From Convolutriloba macropyga (lineage: Eukaryota): a stretch of DNA of 64,000 bases. The notes beneath the pieces are model-generated. The model made no database searches. It was not told the origin of the DNA and saw nothing but the letters and a program-made list of their open reading frames with translations. Position 1 is the stretch's first letter; each line of letters starts with the position of its first letter. The translations under genes and the position numbers were made by a program. This document shows positions 137-8,291 of the stretch, in pieces. The stretch covers positions 25,420,001-25,484,000 of the forward strand of contig NC_134479.1 of NCBI RefSeq assembly GCF_964194025.1, read 5' to 3'.

Positions 137-1635
137 TAAATTAAGATAGTCAATATTTGTGATTTTAAAAACCTTTAATTTTAAAAACTTTAATTTCAAC
201 CGGATATTTTTGCACCGTTTAAAAATGACGAGCAAGATTTGTCGCTGAGTGTACCAATTGATTTTAGATATATATGATAGATTTAATATGGAGATCACCG
301 GCTACGCTTCCGACATTGTCGAAGAAACAAGCAAAATACAGCAGAGGAAGATTGCAGGCTCTTGCAATCAGTGGGTGCTTGGGGGTGTTAGCTTTTCCTA
401 TTTGCATTAATACGTTACAACGACTAGTTTGGAAGCCGTTGAGATTGACTAGTAATTTGAAAGCGGCCCCTTTGTTTGGTAAGTTAATGTTTTCTCATAC
501 TTGAAAAACACTGCGAACTTTTTCAAGAAATCGAGTGATTTTCTGTTGGTCTGTAAGATGTTGCTTTTCGATGAAGCGTTTCGTAATTGCTCAAACCATA
601 ACTTTTGCAGTCGTGTCTTTGTTTTGACGAAATTATTTTTGACTGACCATTTTGACTTTTCGGGCGACTCTTACGATCTTGACTTTTTGAATTTTGTGTG
701 ATCTAAATTGTTCTTTCACATTTTTGAACAGCTCAAAATTTGTTGGCCACAATTTACTACTAAAAGAAAAAATATAAGCTCTAGTAGCATTGTTTAAGGC
801 ATTTAGTGAAACTATTGCCCCGCTATCGCTTTTACTACCGCGCCTTCTCCGGTTGAAGCAGGCACCAGTGAAATGGAGTCCTTATCGTTCGTTCGTGATC
901 AAGTTTTCCGATATTAGTAGGTTATGATAATTATTTTGACGACTGTTTTGTAATGTATTTGTTCTTTTTGATCGTACTTTTTCTGGTTAGTTGGTTTCTA
1001 AGGCTAAATTATTTTTCAATTGCGGTAGAAGATTGTTCAATTGCGGCGTCAAGTACATGTACATTCAGATTGGCTTCAAGTGCATATACACTCCGTTGTT
1101 TAATCTCAACGAAATTTGATAATCAGTTAAAGGACGAGTTTTTCTCTCATTTTTTAGTCTATAACATTTAAATAAAAAATAGCTACTTAGTTAGTTTTAC
1201 TTGAAATTTCAAAATCAAACAATTTTATTCTTAACTTGGATCAACCTAAGGATTGGTTTTCTTCAATTAATCTTATTAAAATGTATGAACCCTGCTATTA
1301 GAACTGTCTATTTTCTGTCCATTAGAACTCTTTCGTGGCGTCAAGTCTTTGCTGATATTGTTTTTGTTCGAATTTGCTCTTCGACTTTCATGATCTAATT
1401 GAAACTGAATGTTTATTCCACTTGCGATTAAAAGTTTGTATAGTTGAACCGCTGATCTTGATTTACGATTTGATGCTAAAAGGAAGGTATGGGCACGCTG
1501 GTCAAAATTGATTGGCTTATTATCGATTTATATTGAAGCTTTTTTAGAGTGGTCTTTTGTGTGCTGTACAAAATTGAGAATTCTATTCAATGAGACATTG
1601 GCTATCTGTCTTAAAGATTTTTTTCCAATAAGATT

Positions 1636-4490
1636 TAGTAGTAGTAGTGCAGGATTTAGAGTACGACTCTTGAGTTTCCACCCAATTTACAGTTCAGATC
1701 AGTTTTCTTCTTTAGTATATTGCAGTTTCGACATCTTCAAATTACTCTCCATGTGCATTTGTTCTCTTCCACATAATGATTTGTGAAGAAATTCCAGTAT
1801 ATTTTCTGTAAAGTAATTTTGTTTAGGGTCTTTCCATAATCTCATGCGCAACTCTAGAAAACTTGTTGAAGAGCAATTTCGTTCTTCTAAAAAGCTATCG
1901 TTAGTTTTGTTAATTCTCGCTTTTGTGGTTCGATGTTCACCTCGTTCGGTCTGACGTGTTGTTTCTACTACTTCTTCAATATCGCTAATAACTACATCAT
2001 AATCCCCTCGAATAATAGATAATAGAAGCAAAAGATCGTGCATTTCTACATAGACTCAGTAGTAACAGTTTTAAGGTCACTAAGCGATTCCGGTAGCTCG
2101 ATTTGAGTTGAGTATCCATTTCGTTGCTTGGTGTTGAACTTTTTTAAATTCGTGGAGGTTACTTCTACTTGGTAGCCATGTTTGAGAGGCATAGACGGCA
2201 ATCGGCACAACATATCATTTGTATGCATTTAGTTTCACTTTCCAGTCACATGAGCTTGACAAATTACGTTTTATTTGAAAGGGTGAGCTCATTGCTTGCT
2301 TTCCTATACTTGCTAAGGTAATTTTCATTTCAACTTAGATTTTGCTGTATATTGAGTCCCCAATTTCTTTGAGACTTTACTGATTCGAGATCTTTCTCCC
2401 CATTTTTTGCCTTGATGCTCCCTTTATTTATTAAGTATTTGAGATTTCTTTGTATTTGGTTTCATTTTGTTGGTTTCAAGCCATTTTTGAATAGTTTATG
2501 TTGCCTTATTCAGGTCATTTTGGTTGTGCGCTATCAATTTAAAATCATCAGCCTTTCAACTTCTTGCATCATTTCGGGCAAGTCATTGATGAACAGGCAG
2601 GAGAAACAGAAGTGGTCCAAGAATTGACCCTTGGAGTACACAGCTTGTGACAATTTGGAGGGAAGGCTCTTGGCCGTTTACTTGAACAAAGTGCTCTCTG
2701 TTTGAGAGATAAGACTTTATTAGTCCCCATATGCTTTCACCAATTCCAAGATATTTCAATTTTTTAAGACGACTTGCGAAACAGTGTCAAAGGCTTTGGC
2801 GAAATCAAGACACAGTACACTTAATTCTCTAGTTGCTCTAAGATCGTTTTAAGTTGTCTCTCTAAGATCGTTTTAATCAGAAATTTGATCTAGAAAAGTG
2901 ATGGACTGAAGTGTGGAAGATCGTCGCTTCCTAAAACCGTACTGACTTGGGCGCAACTTTCTTTCAAAAAAGTAGTAAAATTTGTCAAATATGTCACATC
3001 AGCCTAACTTCCTTCTTTAAACATTGGCGTTATCTGGCTTATTTTCCAATATGTAGGAAACCACTGTTTGTTTATGTATGTCTGGAAGAGTAACTTCATT
3101 GATTTACACAAAGTTTTTGGCAAATCATTAATATGAGTTTCCCAATTCGATCCGGTCCGGTGGATTTGTCTGGATTTAGATCACATAAAATATCGCCGAT
3201 TTGCTTTTCACTACATGTCAGTTTATTTAAGTTTCCATTAGTTTTCGTTGTTGCTAATTTTTCACACTTGCTAAATACTGAAACGAAATAACGATTAAAT
3301 AGTTCTGCCTTTTCCATGTCAACGGACGTCTCCTCATCATTTAATTTCACTGTTGGTGGTATCAAAGCGGTCTTCCTGATGCACTTCAAATGTTTTTTAA
3401 TCTTACTAAAGTTTCGCTCTTCAAAAACCGATTTTTCGAAATCTTGTCAGTCAATGTTACTCTACTGTTTGATTTGCTTTTCTAGCCTTATCAATTTAAT
3501 CAATTTGCTTAGAGAGCACTTAGTTCGTTTTTTGAGTGTATTCAGTCGTTTGATTAAATTTGATGTAAAACTTGAAATCCATGGAACCAGATTAGCTCGG
3601 TGATTGGTTATCCTCGCACAATTTTTTGTCAATTTTTTCCATAACCATTTGTACCATCGGAACAATAGTTCGTCAACATTGCTTTAGCAAAAAGGTAAAA
3701 ACGGTTCTTGTTGAATGCATTCATTTAATTTCTCCCCATGGTTCTTTTGAAGGCTGACATTGTAGATTTTGTTACGGATGAAGTTTCAACTTTAGACGAT
3801 TCAATTATTGTTTCGATCGGCTTGTGGTCAGAAAATTGTTCGTTATTCTGGAAAAGATCTATCAATAACCTTTCTTGATAATCACATTTTATTACCGAAT
3901 GAGGATTTTTACAAAGGACTACATCAAGTTCGTTATTAGAAAAATTACAAATTAAGGTCAATTAGTTTTGCTAATAGCTCTTTTTCGTAATCAAGCTTTG
4001 ACGACGACATAGAGGCCCAGTTTTTTGTGAGAAATTTAAGTCACCCGTTATTATCACTATCACAATGATTTTCAACTGCTTATTCATGGAGCTGCTGCAT
4101 TTCATTTAATTTCCATTGATAGGGGCTAGGGTTCGGTGCATTGTATATATTGCAAATCAAGATATCAGAACCTGTTATTGTCAAAATTTTCATGCTGAAG
4201 TCCGGGTTTTCAATTCCGAACTCTATATATTGGTGAGGAATGTTCATCGTGACTGCGATGAGAACAACACCATATTTGCTCTTTCGGTCTTCAGAAATTT
4301 TGCTATCGTTTCTGTATATCAAGTATTTATCAAGGAAAAGTGCTGACGACGGAATATCTTGTCTTAGCCAATTTCTAGCTGTATCGTATTTGGTTTTGAG
4401 AGAACAAACGTTAATTCCTCATTGTATATGTTTGCTATTTCTATCAATAGAATGAGAGGGTAAGTTTTGGAAAAAAGATAAAACTAAAAT
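1636..4490 (-). mobile_element. Decayed non-LTR retrotransposon ORF2 (APE endonuclease + RT), CR1/L2-like LINE
   Basis: Minus-strand fragments in the expected order: NWL..IYRND..VVLIAV, ICNIYNAP, GDLN, LDVVL, SDHKPI (APE); KAELFNRYFVSVF, KSTGPDRI, LDFAKAFDTV, QGS..GP..FLLFINDL, ADDFKL (RT); C-terminal CTWRVI*RCRNC; (CTA)n tail at ~1636-1648; many stops and frameshifts. ORF1 remnants may extend to ~5000. Confidence 0.85.
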
Positions 4491-5771
4491 AATAATCGGA
4501 CAATACGAGTGAATGGAAATGATCTATCCTTGTTTTTGGATGCGTTTGATGGTAAACCAAGTGTAAGGTTTGATGCTGATGCCATTTTACTGGTAACTTT
4601 GTTCATTTTGAATTGGTGCGCTAATAATTTTTCAACAGTTACACCCAAATACATGCTCATATAGGTTGGCTGTAGTCAGTCCACTTCTTCGTAATGTCTT
4701 TTTTGCGTGAAGTTTAGTTTAGTTTAGTTATAGTCAGCATTAAACAAGTTCAATTTACGACTTTCCTCACTTACATACGTTGTCGAAGGAAAGGGTTTTC
4801 AGTAGAGCAAGCGATTTTTCAGTACCAGTACCCTTATTGATAGTCAATTAGTAATAAGCTAAATTCAGAATAATCATCATTTGGACAATCTTGTTCCCTT
4901 TGCTTATGGGACAGTCAAAATGTATTTTAATCAATTCCCCTTGCGATAAAAACTGTTGCGTAACTTACCGGTGAAGTATCACGTTAAAGCCAAATTAACA
5001 CAAATCTGCTTCGTTATTAGACGAGCCTATCGCACTCTTTTAAACACTGTCGATAGAAGTGTGATAAACTCTTAGTGTAATCAGGGCCAGTGATTTAAGT
5101 TATGTAACTGTTCTAATCGCAACGAGAGTTGATTTAAATCAATACCACACTTTTGTTGTTGGTTTTAGTTCCCATCTGCACCTTCAAATGACTTACCTCT
5201 TTTTAAAATTGAAGAATGATATAGTTGACATACCAGGTAGCGGTCGGAGCACTCGTGACTGAGCAGCTCTCGAGCCTTGCTAGTCTCTAAGTATATCATT
5301 CACCGAAACTGTTTTGAGGAGACATTTTTGAAGAGAGTGAAGGGCGGTTCTTAAATGTTCGAACGGATTAACTCCACCTTTCAACAAATAGTTGATGTGA
5401 TATTGAATTATCTTAATTCGTCCTGGTTACAATTAATTCATAATTTTTTGCCGTCTTGAAACATCATTCTTTTTCATTCTCTCTATAGAAGTACGTCTTG
5501 GATCTTTTCCGACAATATCTTGATGGACTGGTCTCTTATAAGTTTCAGGAATCGTGTAGCTTTGTTTTCTGCCAAATCGTACTCATGTTCGGATTACATT
5601 CAGTTTTAAGTTATAAAATTATAAAGTTATAAATTATTAAGTTATTAAAGTTATAAAATTGTGTTGAAATTGTCAAATGATATTTAAACACGTCGCTTTA
5701 ACTTAACTGTACAGCGTTAACGGTTTCACTCTTGGCTTGTGTTTATTGATTTGAGCTGGTTTCTTATTTAG

Positions 5772-6103
5772 GTTTGATTTCTTTTTCCATCGCCCATGGA
5801 TTGGCAGCAACCGTATTTCATGTATCATTCACGACGATGAACAAGGAGGATCATGTGCGAATCTTGACCAGAAACAATCGTGACATAAATTTCAATCAGA
5901 ATATGCTTTCTTCAGTTTATGATGAAATCTTTGGGGCAACGCAGACAATTGAAATGAAACCAGTGATTGCGTCACTGCTGGCAAATCTGGTCATGTTTCA
6001 CATTTGTGGTGGGAGATTAAGTTCATTGCTTCCTAGTCACCTTTTGGCTGTTGGAGGTTATGGAAGGACAGGCCTATCCTGCTCTATCAAAAGCGCGTCG
6101 AAG
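5772..6103 (+). CDS. Internal exon of an uncharacterised gene (GGRLSSLLPSHL..VGGYG motif); upstream exon(s) not found
   Basis: tttag acceptor (phase 1) at 5771, AAG|gttaga donor at 6103, open frame; joins in phase 0 to the exon at 6500. Confidence 0.7.
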
Positions 6104-6499
6104 GTTAGAAACTTTTTTGGAGCCTAGAATTAAACGTTTAAGTGATTACACTTCATTTTTAGTCTTCTCTATTTCACATAATGGCGATTCTACTCAGAAT
6201 AAACGTTAAGCAAATTATAAGGTTTTACGATTCACCCCTCAGTTAAGCTAACAGATTTTGATATCAAGGTTCGCTTTGTGAAGTGCTCTAACTATATAAA
6301 TGTCCCATTTGGCTGAATTCATCAAAGCTTGTTTTAATATCCGTCTCTGACCGTTTCTCATAAATCTATGCTTATTTTAACATTGACACCGGCTCCGAGT
6401 GCAAAATTGGTGACATGAGTTTCTACGCAGATCATTTTTTCAAATTTTATCCTCTTTTGCTGAAATTGATCTCATTAGCAGGGTGTTCATGTGTTTCAG

Positions 6500-7018
6500 A
6501 ATCAGAAGGAAGCTATCCAAAAACTTGGCGCAACATATGGCTGTCATTCTTGTGGTTCAAAGCTGTACCTGCAACGCATGAAAGAGTCTATGAAATCTTG
6601 GATCAAATACCCGACGACGACGAAGCCTTTCATAAGCGATCATCAGCCTCCTTCAGGTGTTTTGATGCAGTCGTGGTGGAATCGTTGTCAACTGCTATTG
6701 TTTCAGTCGAAGCATTTCAAACAGGCTCTGTACCCACAGTGCAATAAGTGCTCTTTAAAGCAGTCATCTATAGTGAAATTCTTAGCTGATAGTTCTGCAT
6801 TATCCTATAATGGTGCTAACCAGTTTGTGAGTAAATCGTCGAATAATTTGATCAGTAGGTCGATTGTAGTTCACTCGTTATTCAGCTTCAGACTAAGTAT
6901 GTTTTGGTACCCTTTTCTGTCTTATTTTTACTTGACTTCTAACGATTTGCTGCTGATAAAGTTGTCGTTTTTACAGTTTCATAATATGACAATTAAGTTA
7001 ATTCAAAATGTGATTTAG
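6500..7018 (+). CDS. Terminal exon: zinc-binding HNH/His-Me-finger-like domain (GCHSCG..SDHQPP..YPQCNKCS..Q) plus hydrophobic C-terminus
   Basis: tttcag acceptor at 6499 gives ..SIKSASK-NQKEAIQKLG..; motif read directly in the ORF. Confidence 0.7.
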   Translation, partial: NQKEAIQKLGATYGCHSCGSKLYLQRMKESMKSWIKYPTTTKPFISDHQPPSGVLMQSWWNRCQLLLFQSKHFKQALYPQCNKCSLKQSSIVKFLADSSALSYNGANQFVSKSSNNLISRSIVVHSLFSFRLSMFWYPFLSYFYLTSNDLLLIKLSFLQFHNMTIKLIQNVI

Positions 7019-7120: not shown

Positions 7121-8040
7121 TAATAGCCGCCCTCATCTTCTCAGCCGGCTATTATTGCGCTCGTATTTTTTTTACAATTCAAAGAATTTGAATTGTATTG
7201 GGGCGCTGTCTTTTTTTTTAAGATCTGTTCACACATTTTCATGATTTTTGAAGTAAAATTGGAGTAGTGATTTTGGTCACGCCGAAACAGGAAGTGGAGC
7301 GAAAAAGCGAGTGGTTTTGCGGCGTGAAATTTTTTCGCTCTAAATTTAAAGTAGAGTGAGAGAACGGTGTTTGAACAAAAATTCGCTTTCTCGCTAGTGG
7401 TTTTTTGTTCACATGCGGCAATTTCACTTTGATTTTTACAGTTTTTTCGATTTTTTGGATCGGATTTTTTTCGAAATGGTTTTTCCAATCCATTCATAGT
7501 CCGTTCTTGGTCTAGTTTTCTGTTTAGTCAATGAAAATTCTTTGAATTGTGTGTCAGGACTTGTCCTGCTATGTTTTTTTACTTCGTCAAACTTTTTTTC
7601 GCTTTACCATTTTGCCGCTTTTTCGACATTTTGCGTGAAATCTTTTTGACTTCTCTAGGCTAGTTTCACTCTTCTCTCATTCTGCTAAAAGTGAATTTGA
7701 ACATCAGTTGCTAAGCAAAGCAATTCAAAATGAACAGAGTCGGTATAAAAAATCAGAAATAGAAACGGGATAAACCCATAAAGCCCAATTTTAGATGCCC
7801 GCTATTTGAACGTCGTTCCTATAAGTCTTATTTACCATCTCTAATGCTTATTGTTATTGATGGTAGTCGCCTCTCTAAAACAGAAGTATGTTCAACTACG
7901 AAATGCCATCAAAATAAATCGGACTTAAAAAATTTTTTGTACAAAAATCTTTTTTTTTCAATATATTCTATTCGTTCAATCCCAATCATGCTTATTGGAA
8001 TCAACGGCGGCTATTTTCCGGCAATCTGCCGGGTATGTTT
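7121..8040 (+). mobile_element. HINE-like non-autonomous Helentron, family A, complete (~920 bp)
   Basis: 5' AATAGCCGCC and 3' GGCGGCTATT are exact reverse complements; 3' hairpin CCGGCAATCTGCCGG; T-rich flanks, no TSD; internal blocks shared with 14880-15425, 23400-23900 and 62596-63140. Confidence 0.75.
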
Positions 8041-8132: not shown

Positions 8133-8291
8133 ATGCCCAAAAAGTTCCCGCAACAAAATTCGAAGGCCGTTGAGGCCAATGCTCGCAAGACTGCGGCCAA
8201 GGAAGCAAAGCAGCAAGCAGATGACAAAGCCAAAGAGGACGCGTATTGGGCTGATGACGACAAGCATGTGAAGAAAAAGGAAGAACGCAAG
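8133..8291 (+). CDS. CCDC124: CCDC124 (Lso2/Oxs1 homolog) exon 1
   Basis: MPKKF..NSKAVEANARK..EDAYWADDDKHVKKKEERK, the conserved CCDC124 N-terminus; donor AAG|gtgagt. Confidence 0.92.

Follow-up and report, generated by a model that had tools for sequence, protein, structure and literature searches.

A single-copy gene with three exons in the acoel Convolutriloba macropyga encodes a predicted HNH/EndoVII-type nuclease of the NGO1392-like toxin clade

We analyzed a 64,000-nucleotide stretch of the genome of Convolutriloba macropyga (RefSeq assembly GCF_964194025.1, contig NC_134479.1, positions 25,420,001 to 25,484,000 of the forward strand; hereafter the window, whose own numbering is used throughout) and find in it a three-exon gene for a 351-residue protein with a zinc-binding HNH/EndoVII-type domain shared with the killing tips of bacterial polymorphic toxins. 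We consider it probable that this is a functional acoel gene whose product is a nuclease of the NGO1392-like clade, recruited long ago, predicted to be still catalytic, and now holding a housekeeping job. The gene model, its single-copy status, its conservation, the beta-beta-alpha fold and the clade membership are established by the evidence below, the fold from structure models and the membership from sequence comparison. A preliminary description, made from the nucleotide sequence alone, had drawn attention to positions 5772-7018 as an intron-containing animal gene with a toxin-like nuclease module.

Results

Gene structure and copy number

Re-reading and translating 5772-7018 yields, as first described, two frames joined by splicing, with exons 5772-6103 and 6500-7018. 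The joined product runs ...GGRLSSLLPSHLLAVGGYG...SASK to the junction and continues as NQKEAIQKLGATYGCHSCG-x27-DHQPP-x26-YPQCNKCSLKQ; the splice sites and, on the spliced protein, both spacings were verified. The open reading frame (ORF) 5774-6127 is coding only as far as 6103, directly before the GT donor at 6104. The preliminary description had also suspected a missing 5' exon, which is located at 274-478, 5.3 kb upstream, and was found by way of P0002, a relative of full length (346 aa) that an exhaustive HMMER search had returned. Its donor, G/GTAAGT at 478/479 with the GT at 479-480, is in phase 1, and the first conserved hydrophobic helix of the protein (residues 27-48) is encoded at bases 352-417. 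The spliced coding sequence (274-478, 5772-6103, 6500-7018) comprises 1056 nt and translates without a stop into 351 aa, which align end to end with P0002 at 51% identity. The product is letter-for-letter the RefSeq protein XP_075258106.1 ("uncharacterized protein LOC142350230", Convolutriloba macropyga), in keeping with the earlier claim of an intron-containing animal gene. P0002 itself derives from a 1116-nt metatranscriptome contig with one uninterrupted ORF and is aligned across both junction positions. An alternative GTGAGT donor at 6826 was ruled out, the ortholog alignment being gap-free through this position. The lead-in motif LPSHLLAVGGYG, with P156 at 6032-6034, forms the start of the nuclease domain (about 6014-6103 in exon 2), and exon 3 ends with a C-terminal hydrophobic/aromatic helix region (about 6860-6937) that contains the nearly invariant H304.

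A profile of the domain finds one location only in the 1.18-Gb C. macropyga genome. On a second assembly contig (L004) the locus is colinear at 92-96% identity, with the gene intact and all four splice sites present, and both alleles occur at similar depth in the genomic runs, which identifies L004 as the other haplotype. Between the two copies, the ratio of nonsynonymous to synonymous substitution rates (dN/dS, NG86) is 0.31 overall, with zero replacements in residues 185-269. The locus lies on a 58-Mb chromosome-scale contig between animal-type repeats. A transposon ORF, which the preliminary description had named as a possible contrary finding, and likewise a homing-endonuclease ORF, were rejected on the strength of the single genome match, the gene's own introns and the orthologous haplotype copy.

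Sequence family and conserved residues

The exhaustive HMMER search, of 1.84 billion sequences, returned 121 cluster representatives at E ≤ 1e-3, and with phmmer E-values of 1.8e-65 and 4.2e-37 to the two closest proteins the sequence match to relatives is far beyond chance. Nine residues are invariant in 113 aligned domains (C194, H195, D226, H227, P229, P230, C260, C263 and Q267), and G189, G193, C197 (112/113) and P258 (112/113) are nearly so. Position 259 is Q in 100 of these domains and H in 12, and the residue after C263 is Ser in 85 of the 113. P156, S157 and G163 are nearly invariant or invariant among 65 eukaryote-type relatives. Of the H...N...H triad of classical HNH domains the first His is present (H227), while the complete triad is absent.

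No significant match to the C. macropyga protein exists among Pfam, NCBIfam and PADLOC models. When 120 relatives were compared with Pfam, just one touched HNH_5 (E 1.5e-4), and no Pfam model covers the domain in the bacterial toxin tips either; eukaryotic and bacterial members thus both fall outside Pfam, which explains the "uncharacterized" label. A weak match to DUF7828 (E 0.003) is under the cut-off, and this DUF is not mentioned in the searched literature. HMMER searches of PDB sequences, with the single sequence and with a profile, gave chance-level matches only, and word-indexed homolog searches with the ortholog, the full-family profile and the window domain region returned almost nothing and no names. 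The protein-language-model neighbors include GH-E, HNH and colicin DNase clusters.

Predicted fold

AlphaFold2 models of the full-length ortholog (pLDDT 82, pTM 0.80) and of the window domain (pLDDT 79) contain an HNH-type core. In the domain model, residues 224-228 and 254-259 are strands and 261-276 a helix: strand 1 consists of FISDH and strand 2 of ALYPQ, and the following helix opens with the second CxxC and Q267, so that the modeled layout is that of a beta-beta-alpha-metal (His-Me finger) domain. In an exhaustive structure alignment against 48,161 PDB representatives, ranks 1-16 were all HNH/EndoVII nucleases (Z 5.1-2.4), headed by the ZRANB3 HNH domain (Z 5.1, 89 residues), T4 endonuclease VII (Z 4.3) and the GVE2 HNH domain (Z 4.0) and including Cap5, Gme, McrA, IscB and the Cas9 HNH domain. 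ZRANB3 HNH was recovered again with the full-length model. The zinc-type CxxC..DH..CxxC layout that had been proposed from the letters agrees with this core and these matches. A homodimer prediction for the 351-aa protein scored 0.00, which counts neither for nor against a dimer.

Relationship to bacterial toxins

A published clade of the HNH/EndoVII fold, "NGO1392-like / Tox-SuFu-Nuc", has the signature CxxC, DH, CxxC, Q (Zhang et al. 2012, Biology Direct; PMC3482391 Table 2), is spread over many bacterial phyla and over apicomplexa, choanoflagellates, metazoa, stramenopiles and viridiplantae, and is listed with the immunity partners Imm-SuFu, Imm13, Imm21, Imm33 and Imm38 (PMC3482391). All signature residues are present in the C. 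macropyga protein, as C194xxC197, D226-H227, C260xxC263 and Q267. A tblastn search of plasmids with residues 175-290 found the C-terminal tip of an RHS toxin on Bacillus toyonensis pBT002 (E 7e-5), where the tip ORF comes after a YD-repeat ORF, and tblastn also matched the very C-terminus of a DNRLRE-domain protein, 2,200 aa long, of Priestia megaterium (E 4e-4). Identity in the toxin-tip alignment (A3), lead-in motif included, is 33-42%, and the zinc knuckles, DHQPP, RLYP[QH]CxxCSxxQ and the lead-in G.[FY]A..S.PA are common to the window domain and the tips.

Scanning these two tips against 185,579 species genomes uncovered 18 further loci, from Bacillota, Actinomycetota, Proteobacteria, Bacteroidota, Chlorobi and Acidobacteria. 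There the domain usually closes a long open frame (seven frames have 1,000-1,400 aa or more), and PT-HINT lies upstream in two of the loci. ORFs directly downstream of the tips encode Imm21 (L017), Imm33-like proteins (L015, L016), SUKH (L027, L029) and DUF7003 (L013, L014); SuFu was found in none of the ten downstream ORFs scanned. The likeness to RHS and polymorphic-toxin tips, which the preliminary description had proposed, is borne out by the two tblastn matches and by the additional toxin loci, several of them with immunity genes. By signature, spread and immunity partners, as published, we assign the window domain to the NGO1392-like clade, an assignment made through these sequence features rather than through an alignment with NGO1392 itself.

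Free-standing bacterial proteins that carry the domain twice in tandem, such as Xanthomonas campestris WP_279585515.1, are among the better bacterial matches of the window domain (E down to 7e-10) and are not classic toxin tips. Two of four such neighborhoods lie beside type VI secretion genes (Xanthomonas tssF/G-clpV; VgrG-DUF4280) and two are of housekeeping type. Scanning the genome collection with the Xanthomonas tandem-domain protein returned nothing, and the phage collection gave one chance-level match (E 0.4), by which the reported mycobacteriophage members were not confirmed.

Two features of the bacterial loci stand apart from the acoel gene. DUF7003 (PF22535; E 2e-40 and 6e-37) occupies the immunity position after the tips in L013 (Lysinibacillus) and L014 (Shouchella); it is outside the 2012 immunity list of the clade and may be an unrecorded immunity family. 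In L026, L027 and L029 (Chlorobiaceae, Ca. Angelobacter and Saprospiraceae) the tips keep DHQPP and ...FYPHSxxSxRKQG and have lost all four zinc cysteines, with GDHSN in place of GCHxCG, and SUKH-family immunity genes follow. Judged from their sequences, these Cys-less tips look like a zinc-less offshoot of the same clade.

Eukaryotic relatives and architecture

Patchily distributed eukaryotic relatives, which had been anticipated, do exist. The named or labeled ones are from Theileria parva and T. equi and from clusters in which Cnidaria, Bacillariophyta and Chlorophyta are the commonest labeled phyla, in agreement with the published spread over apicomplexa, metazoa, stramenopiles and viridiplantae. 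By sequence, conservation of the family extends over acoels, cnidarians, ciliates and diatoms.

Eukaryote-type members have a common architecture that the bacterial toxins are without. The frame around the domain comprises three conserved hydrophobic helices within some 150 N-terminal residues, helices 1 and 2 being modeled as a long hairpin, and an aromatic helix region on the C-terminal side; the domain itself carries two insertions. H304 (window 6872-6874) is found in at least 90% of eukaryote-type members, within the consensus HxxxxRxxH (alignment A5); it lies past the short tails that end the bacterial tips and could be an added active-site or metal residue. A domain tree of 78 usable columns is poorly resolved and was used only for the coarse division between eukaryote-type and bacterial domains: a split with SH-aLRT about 81-83 separates 63 of the 68 eukaryote-type domains from every tip and most of the tandem domains. 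This topology is compatible with one old acquisition.

The hydrophobic segments that had been noticed are present, flanking the domain on both sides. The 19-residue Kyte-Doolittle means of the three helices are 1.6-2.1 in the C. macropyga protein and about 1.1-1.2 as family means. Summed insertion energies are marginal, at +2.4 to +4.7 for this protein and with family medians of about +4 to +5.5. Residues 20-96 model as a long helical hairpin with weak, generic resemblance to many membrane hairpins (Z 5-6.5). From its sequence, the helical frame could be a membrane anchor, or else a soluble scaffold or restraint.

Genomic surroundings

The coordinates of the gene and its motifs are collected in Table 1. 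Within intron 1, at about 2400-4330 on the minus strand, lies retrotransposon debris, and in the colinear haplotype contig a gene with an RVT_1 hit is called at L004 3986-4486; the minus-strand ORFs 3096-3389 and 4080-4322 of this intron have no Pfam match. Just downstream of the gene, a repeat of ~0.9 kb at 7121-8035 is missing at the orthologous site, where L004 joins window 7121 straight to 8035 with a 6-bp overlap; further copies of the repeat occur elsewhere in L004 (166-1167). Depth over 7121-8035 reaches millions in the genomic runs, which marks the repeat as a very high-copy family with presence/absence polymorphism at this site. The short ORF at 8133-8290 (+), which begins with MPKKFPQQNSKAVEANARKTAAKEAKQQADDKAKEDAYWADDDKHVKKKEERK and has no Pfam match, resembles what we take to be the N-terminal exon of a CCDC124-type protein, presumably the next gene downstream.

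Table 1. Exons, introns and conserved nuclease motifs of the C. macropyga gene (window coordinates)
Feature	Coordinates	Strand	Description
Exon 1	274..478	+	ATG at 274; residues 1-68 and first base of codon 69; ORF 274-504 aligns to the N-terminus of ortholog P0002, and the spliced product equals XP_075258106.1
Intron 1	479..5771	+	5293 bp; GT 479-480, AG 5770-5771, both also in haplotype L004
Exon 2	5772..6103	+	Residues 69-179; hydrophobic helices 2 and 3; lead-in motif LPSHLLAVGGYG
Intron 2	6104..6499	+	396 bp, interrupts the nuclease domain; GT 6104, AG 6498-6499, both also in L004
Exon 3	6500..7018	+	Residues 180-351 and stop (7016-7018); predicted HNH/EndoVII core 6500-6790
First zinc knuckle, C194-H195-S196-C197	6542..6553	+	C194 and H195 invariant; C197 in 112/113
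D226-H227-Q-P229-P230	6638..6652	+	End of beta-strand 1 (E75-79 of domain model)
P258-Q259-C260-N-K-C263-S264-L-K-Q267	6734..6763	+	End of beta-strand 2, second zinc knuckle, Gln on alpha-helix (H112-127 of model)

Discussion

If the domain is an active nuclease, as we think probable, its chemistry would be that established for His-Me finger enzymes, from which the following steps are drawn. By analogy with T4 endonuclease VII, C194, C197, C260 and C263 would coordinate a structural zinc; H227, where strand 1 ends, would serve as the general base that activates the attacking water; and D226 and Q267, possibly with Q259 or S264, would hold the catalytic divalent metal. Q267 lies four residues past the last Cys of the second knuckle, which we take to be the position of Glu65 in endonuclease VII. 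The protein would then cut nucleic acid, most likely DNA, while its helical frame would tether it to a membrane or restrain it, and its cellular job would be one of housekeeping, for example DNA repair or the maintenance of organelle DNA, and not one of toxin warfare. The best indirect argument for activity comes from the bacterial tips, which carry the same residues and are guarded by immunity genes, indicating that this residue set is catalytically toxic.

Several observations weigh against an active, housekeeping nuclease. No Pfam HNH model (PF01844 and its kin HNH_2-5, GH-E and Endonuclease_7) scores above its curated threshold, and the canonical last His/Asn of HNH domains, right after the second CxxC, is replaced (S264, with the invariant Q267 at +4). 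The preliminary description had expected support from either a beta-beta-alpha-metal fold or an HNH profile, and from AlphaFold and Foldseek comparisons; the core is present in the AlphaFold2 models and is matched in the exhaustive PDB comparison, whereas the profile match is wanting and Foldseek searches of the PDB with the full and domain models gave nothing at E ≤ 0.001, listing NucB, Cap5 and Gme HNH only at E 1.8-5.8. With a maximum of 5.1, the structural Z scores are modest; what gives the modeled fold its weight is that a single superfamily occupies the leading ranks and that the protein-language-model neighbors agree. Between the two haplotypes exon conservation is not above intron conservation; the stronger argument for constraint is the deep conservation of the whole architecture in sequence comparisons. 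The four read runs containing the stretch are all genomic DNA, none RNA, and are silent on splicing, so that in C. macropyga splicing rests on homology and the RefSeq model. The hydrophobicity sums do not support membrane insertion. Nuclease activity is not reported for any member of the clade in the searched literature, and the cellular role, whether repair, organelle or other, is purely our inference.

Some of these points are also what one would expect of a catalytically dead relic retained as a nucleic-acid- or protein-binding zinc module, in the manner of the teneurin Tox-GHH domain. The domain lacks the final metal ligand of canonical HNH domains (S264/Q267), HNH profiles give no match, and there is published precedent for eukaryotic recruits of toxin HNH domains in which activity was lost (PMC3417536; PMC3482391 Table 2). 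Teneurins, in contrast, have lost their conserved histidines (PMC3482391), whereas D226, H227 and Q267 are invariant in 113/113 domains, the immunity-paired bacterial toxin tips included, so that the residue set is evidently an active one. We regard a dead relic as unlikely, though it is the most serious of the alternatives.

Less probable still is a host-defense effector, a toxin-derived nuclease, membrane-anchored or secreted, that acts against bacteria, viruses or algal symbionts. Toxin ancestry would suit such a role, a signal anchor could be formed by the basic N-terminus and the hydrophobic helices behind it, and acoels are reported to be without conserved immune signaling pathways (PMC12849515), which makes unconventional effectors conceivable. 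The gene is nevertheless single-copy and its family not expanded; dN/dS is about 0.3 and the core has no replacements, giving no sign of diversifying selection; and the architecture is constant across very distant eukaryotes. Zhang, Iyer and Aravind (2011, Nucleic Acids Research) described the eukaryotic versions as conserved and little diverged, for which reason they held them unlikely to be toxins, and suggested possible recruitment for DNA repair (PMC3113570). That the locus is no working animal gene at all, being a pseudogene, an annotation artifact, or contaminant or symbiont DNA, is very improbable: RNA runs of the species are absent from the runs containing the stretch and exons and introns diverge similarly between haplotypes, but the frame of 351 codons in three exons with GT-AG introns is clean in both haplotypes, sits on a 58-Mb chromosome-scale contig with animal-type repeats on both sides, aligns at full length to an expressed ortholog and retains every family-invariant residue.

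A more specific idea within the active-nuclease reading, and a doubtful one, is that the eukaryotic branch represents a new kind of membrane-embedded HNH nuclease. Anchored by its hairpin in an organelle or endomembrane, for example in the mitochondrial inner membrane beside the nucleoid, it might act as a structure-specific DNA nuclease or resolvase. To our knowledge no such enzyme is known in acoels, cnidarians, ciliates, piroplasms, diatoms or green algae, and if the idea is correct, all of these groups would possess one.

Sequence analyses published in 2011-2012 had already described both the family and its occurrence across eukaryotes (PMC3113570, PMC3482391), and no later work on it was found in the searched literature; fifteen years after first notice it has no Pfam model, no name and, in that literature, no experiment. 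What appears to be a bacterial warfare nuclease has persisted in animals and many protists as a conserved gene in single copy, none of its catalytic-looking residues having been lost. To the published picture the acoel gene adds an exon structure, a family-wide eukaryotic architecture (helical frame, insertions and His304), a second bacterial form with tandem domains, and specific residues. If the enzyme is active, its role would be new biology, for which DNA repair (proposed in 2011), organelle DNA upkeep and defense are candidates, and the question is tractable in relatives such as Nematostella, Phaeodactylum, Tetrahymena and Chlamydomonas.

Comparison with known systems

Teneurin Tox-GHH and DFF40/CAD (Tox-HNH-CIDE) offer parallels for the route taken, each being a bacterial polymorphic-toxin HNH/EndoVII tip recruited into eukaryotic genes (PMC3482391, PMC3417536). 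They belong to other HNH clades, however; teneurins lost the catalytic histidines while the family described here keeps all its invariant residues, and CAD has a dedicated inhibitor, ICAD, whereas no partner is known for this family. Among structures, human ZRANB3 HNH (PDB 5mkw), a eukaryotic HNH nuclease of DNA repair, matches best (Z 5.1, 89-90 residues), but differs in its 11% identity, its SNF2 translocase context and its position outside the NGO1392-like clade.

T4 endonuclease VII (PDB 1e7d) resembles the modeled domain in having a beta-beta-alpha-metal core clamped by a Cys4 zinc site of two CxxC knuckles, with a DH pair after the first knuckle and polar residues just after the second (94 residues aligned, Z 4.3). 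Profiles reveal no sequence match between it and the family, and the T4 enzyme is a soluble dimeric junction resolvase, whereas no dimer evidence was obtained for the acoel protein. After the second knuckle, endonuclease VII presumably has Asn and Glu where the family has Ser and the invariant Gln.

The closest comparisons lie within bacteria. Tandem-domain proteins are among the best-scoring matches after the acoel protein, its acoel-like orthologs and a few protist proteins, and have the same invariant residues; they differ in carrying two domains per chain and no helical frame. With the NGO1392-like clade (PMC3113570, PMC3482391) the C. macropyga protein shares signature, predicted fold, and homology to RHS, PT-HINT and DNRLRE tips. 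Bacterial members of the clade serve as the toxic C-terminal ends of RHS, HINT-processed and MafB-type polymorphic toxins, whereas the acoel member is no toxin tip and has no immunity partner: it is a stand-alone eukaryotic protein of 351 aa, encoded with introns, whose domain bears two eukaryote-specific insertions and is wrapped by conserved helices, which take up about 150 residues on its N-terminal side and about 60 on its C-terminal side.

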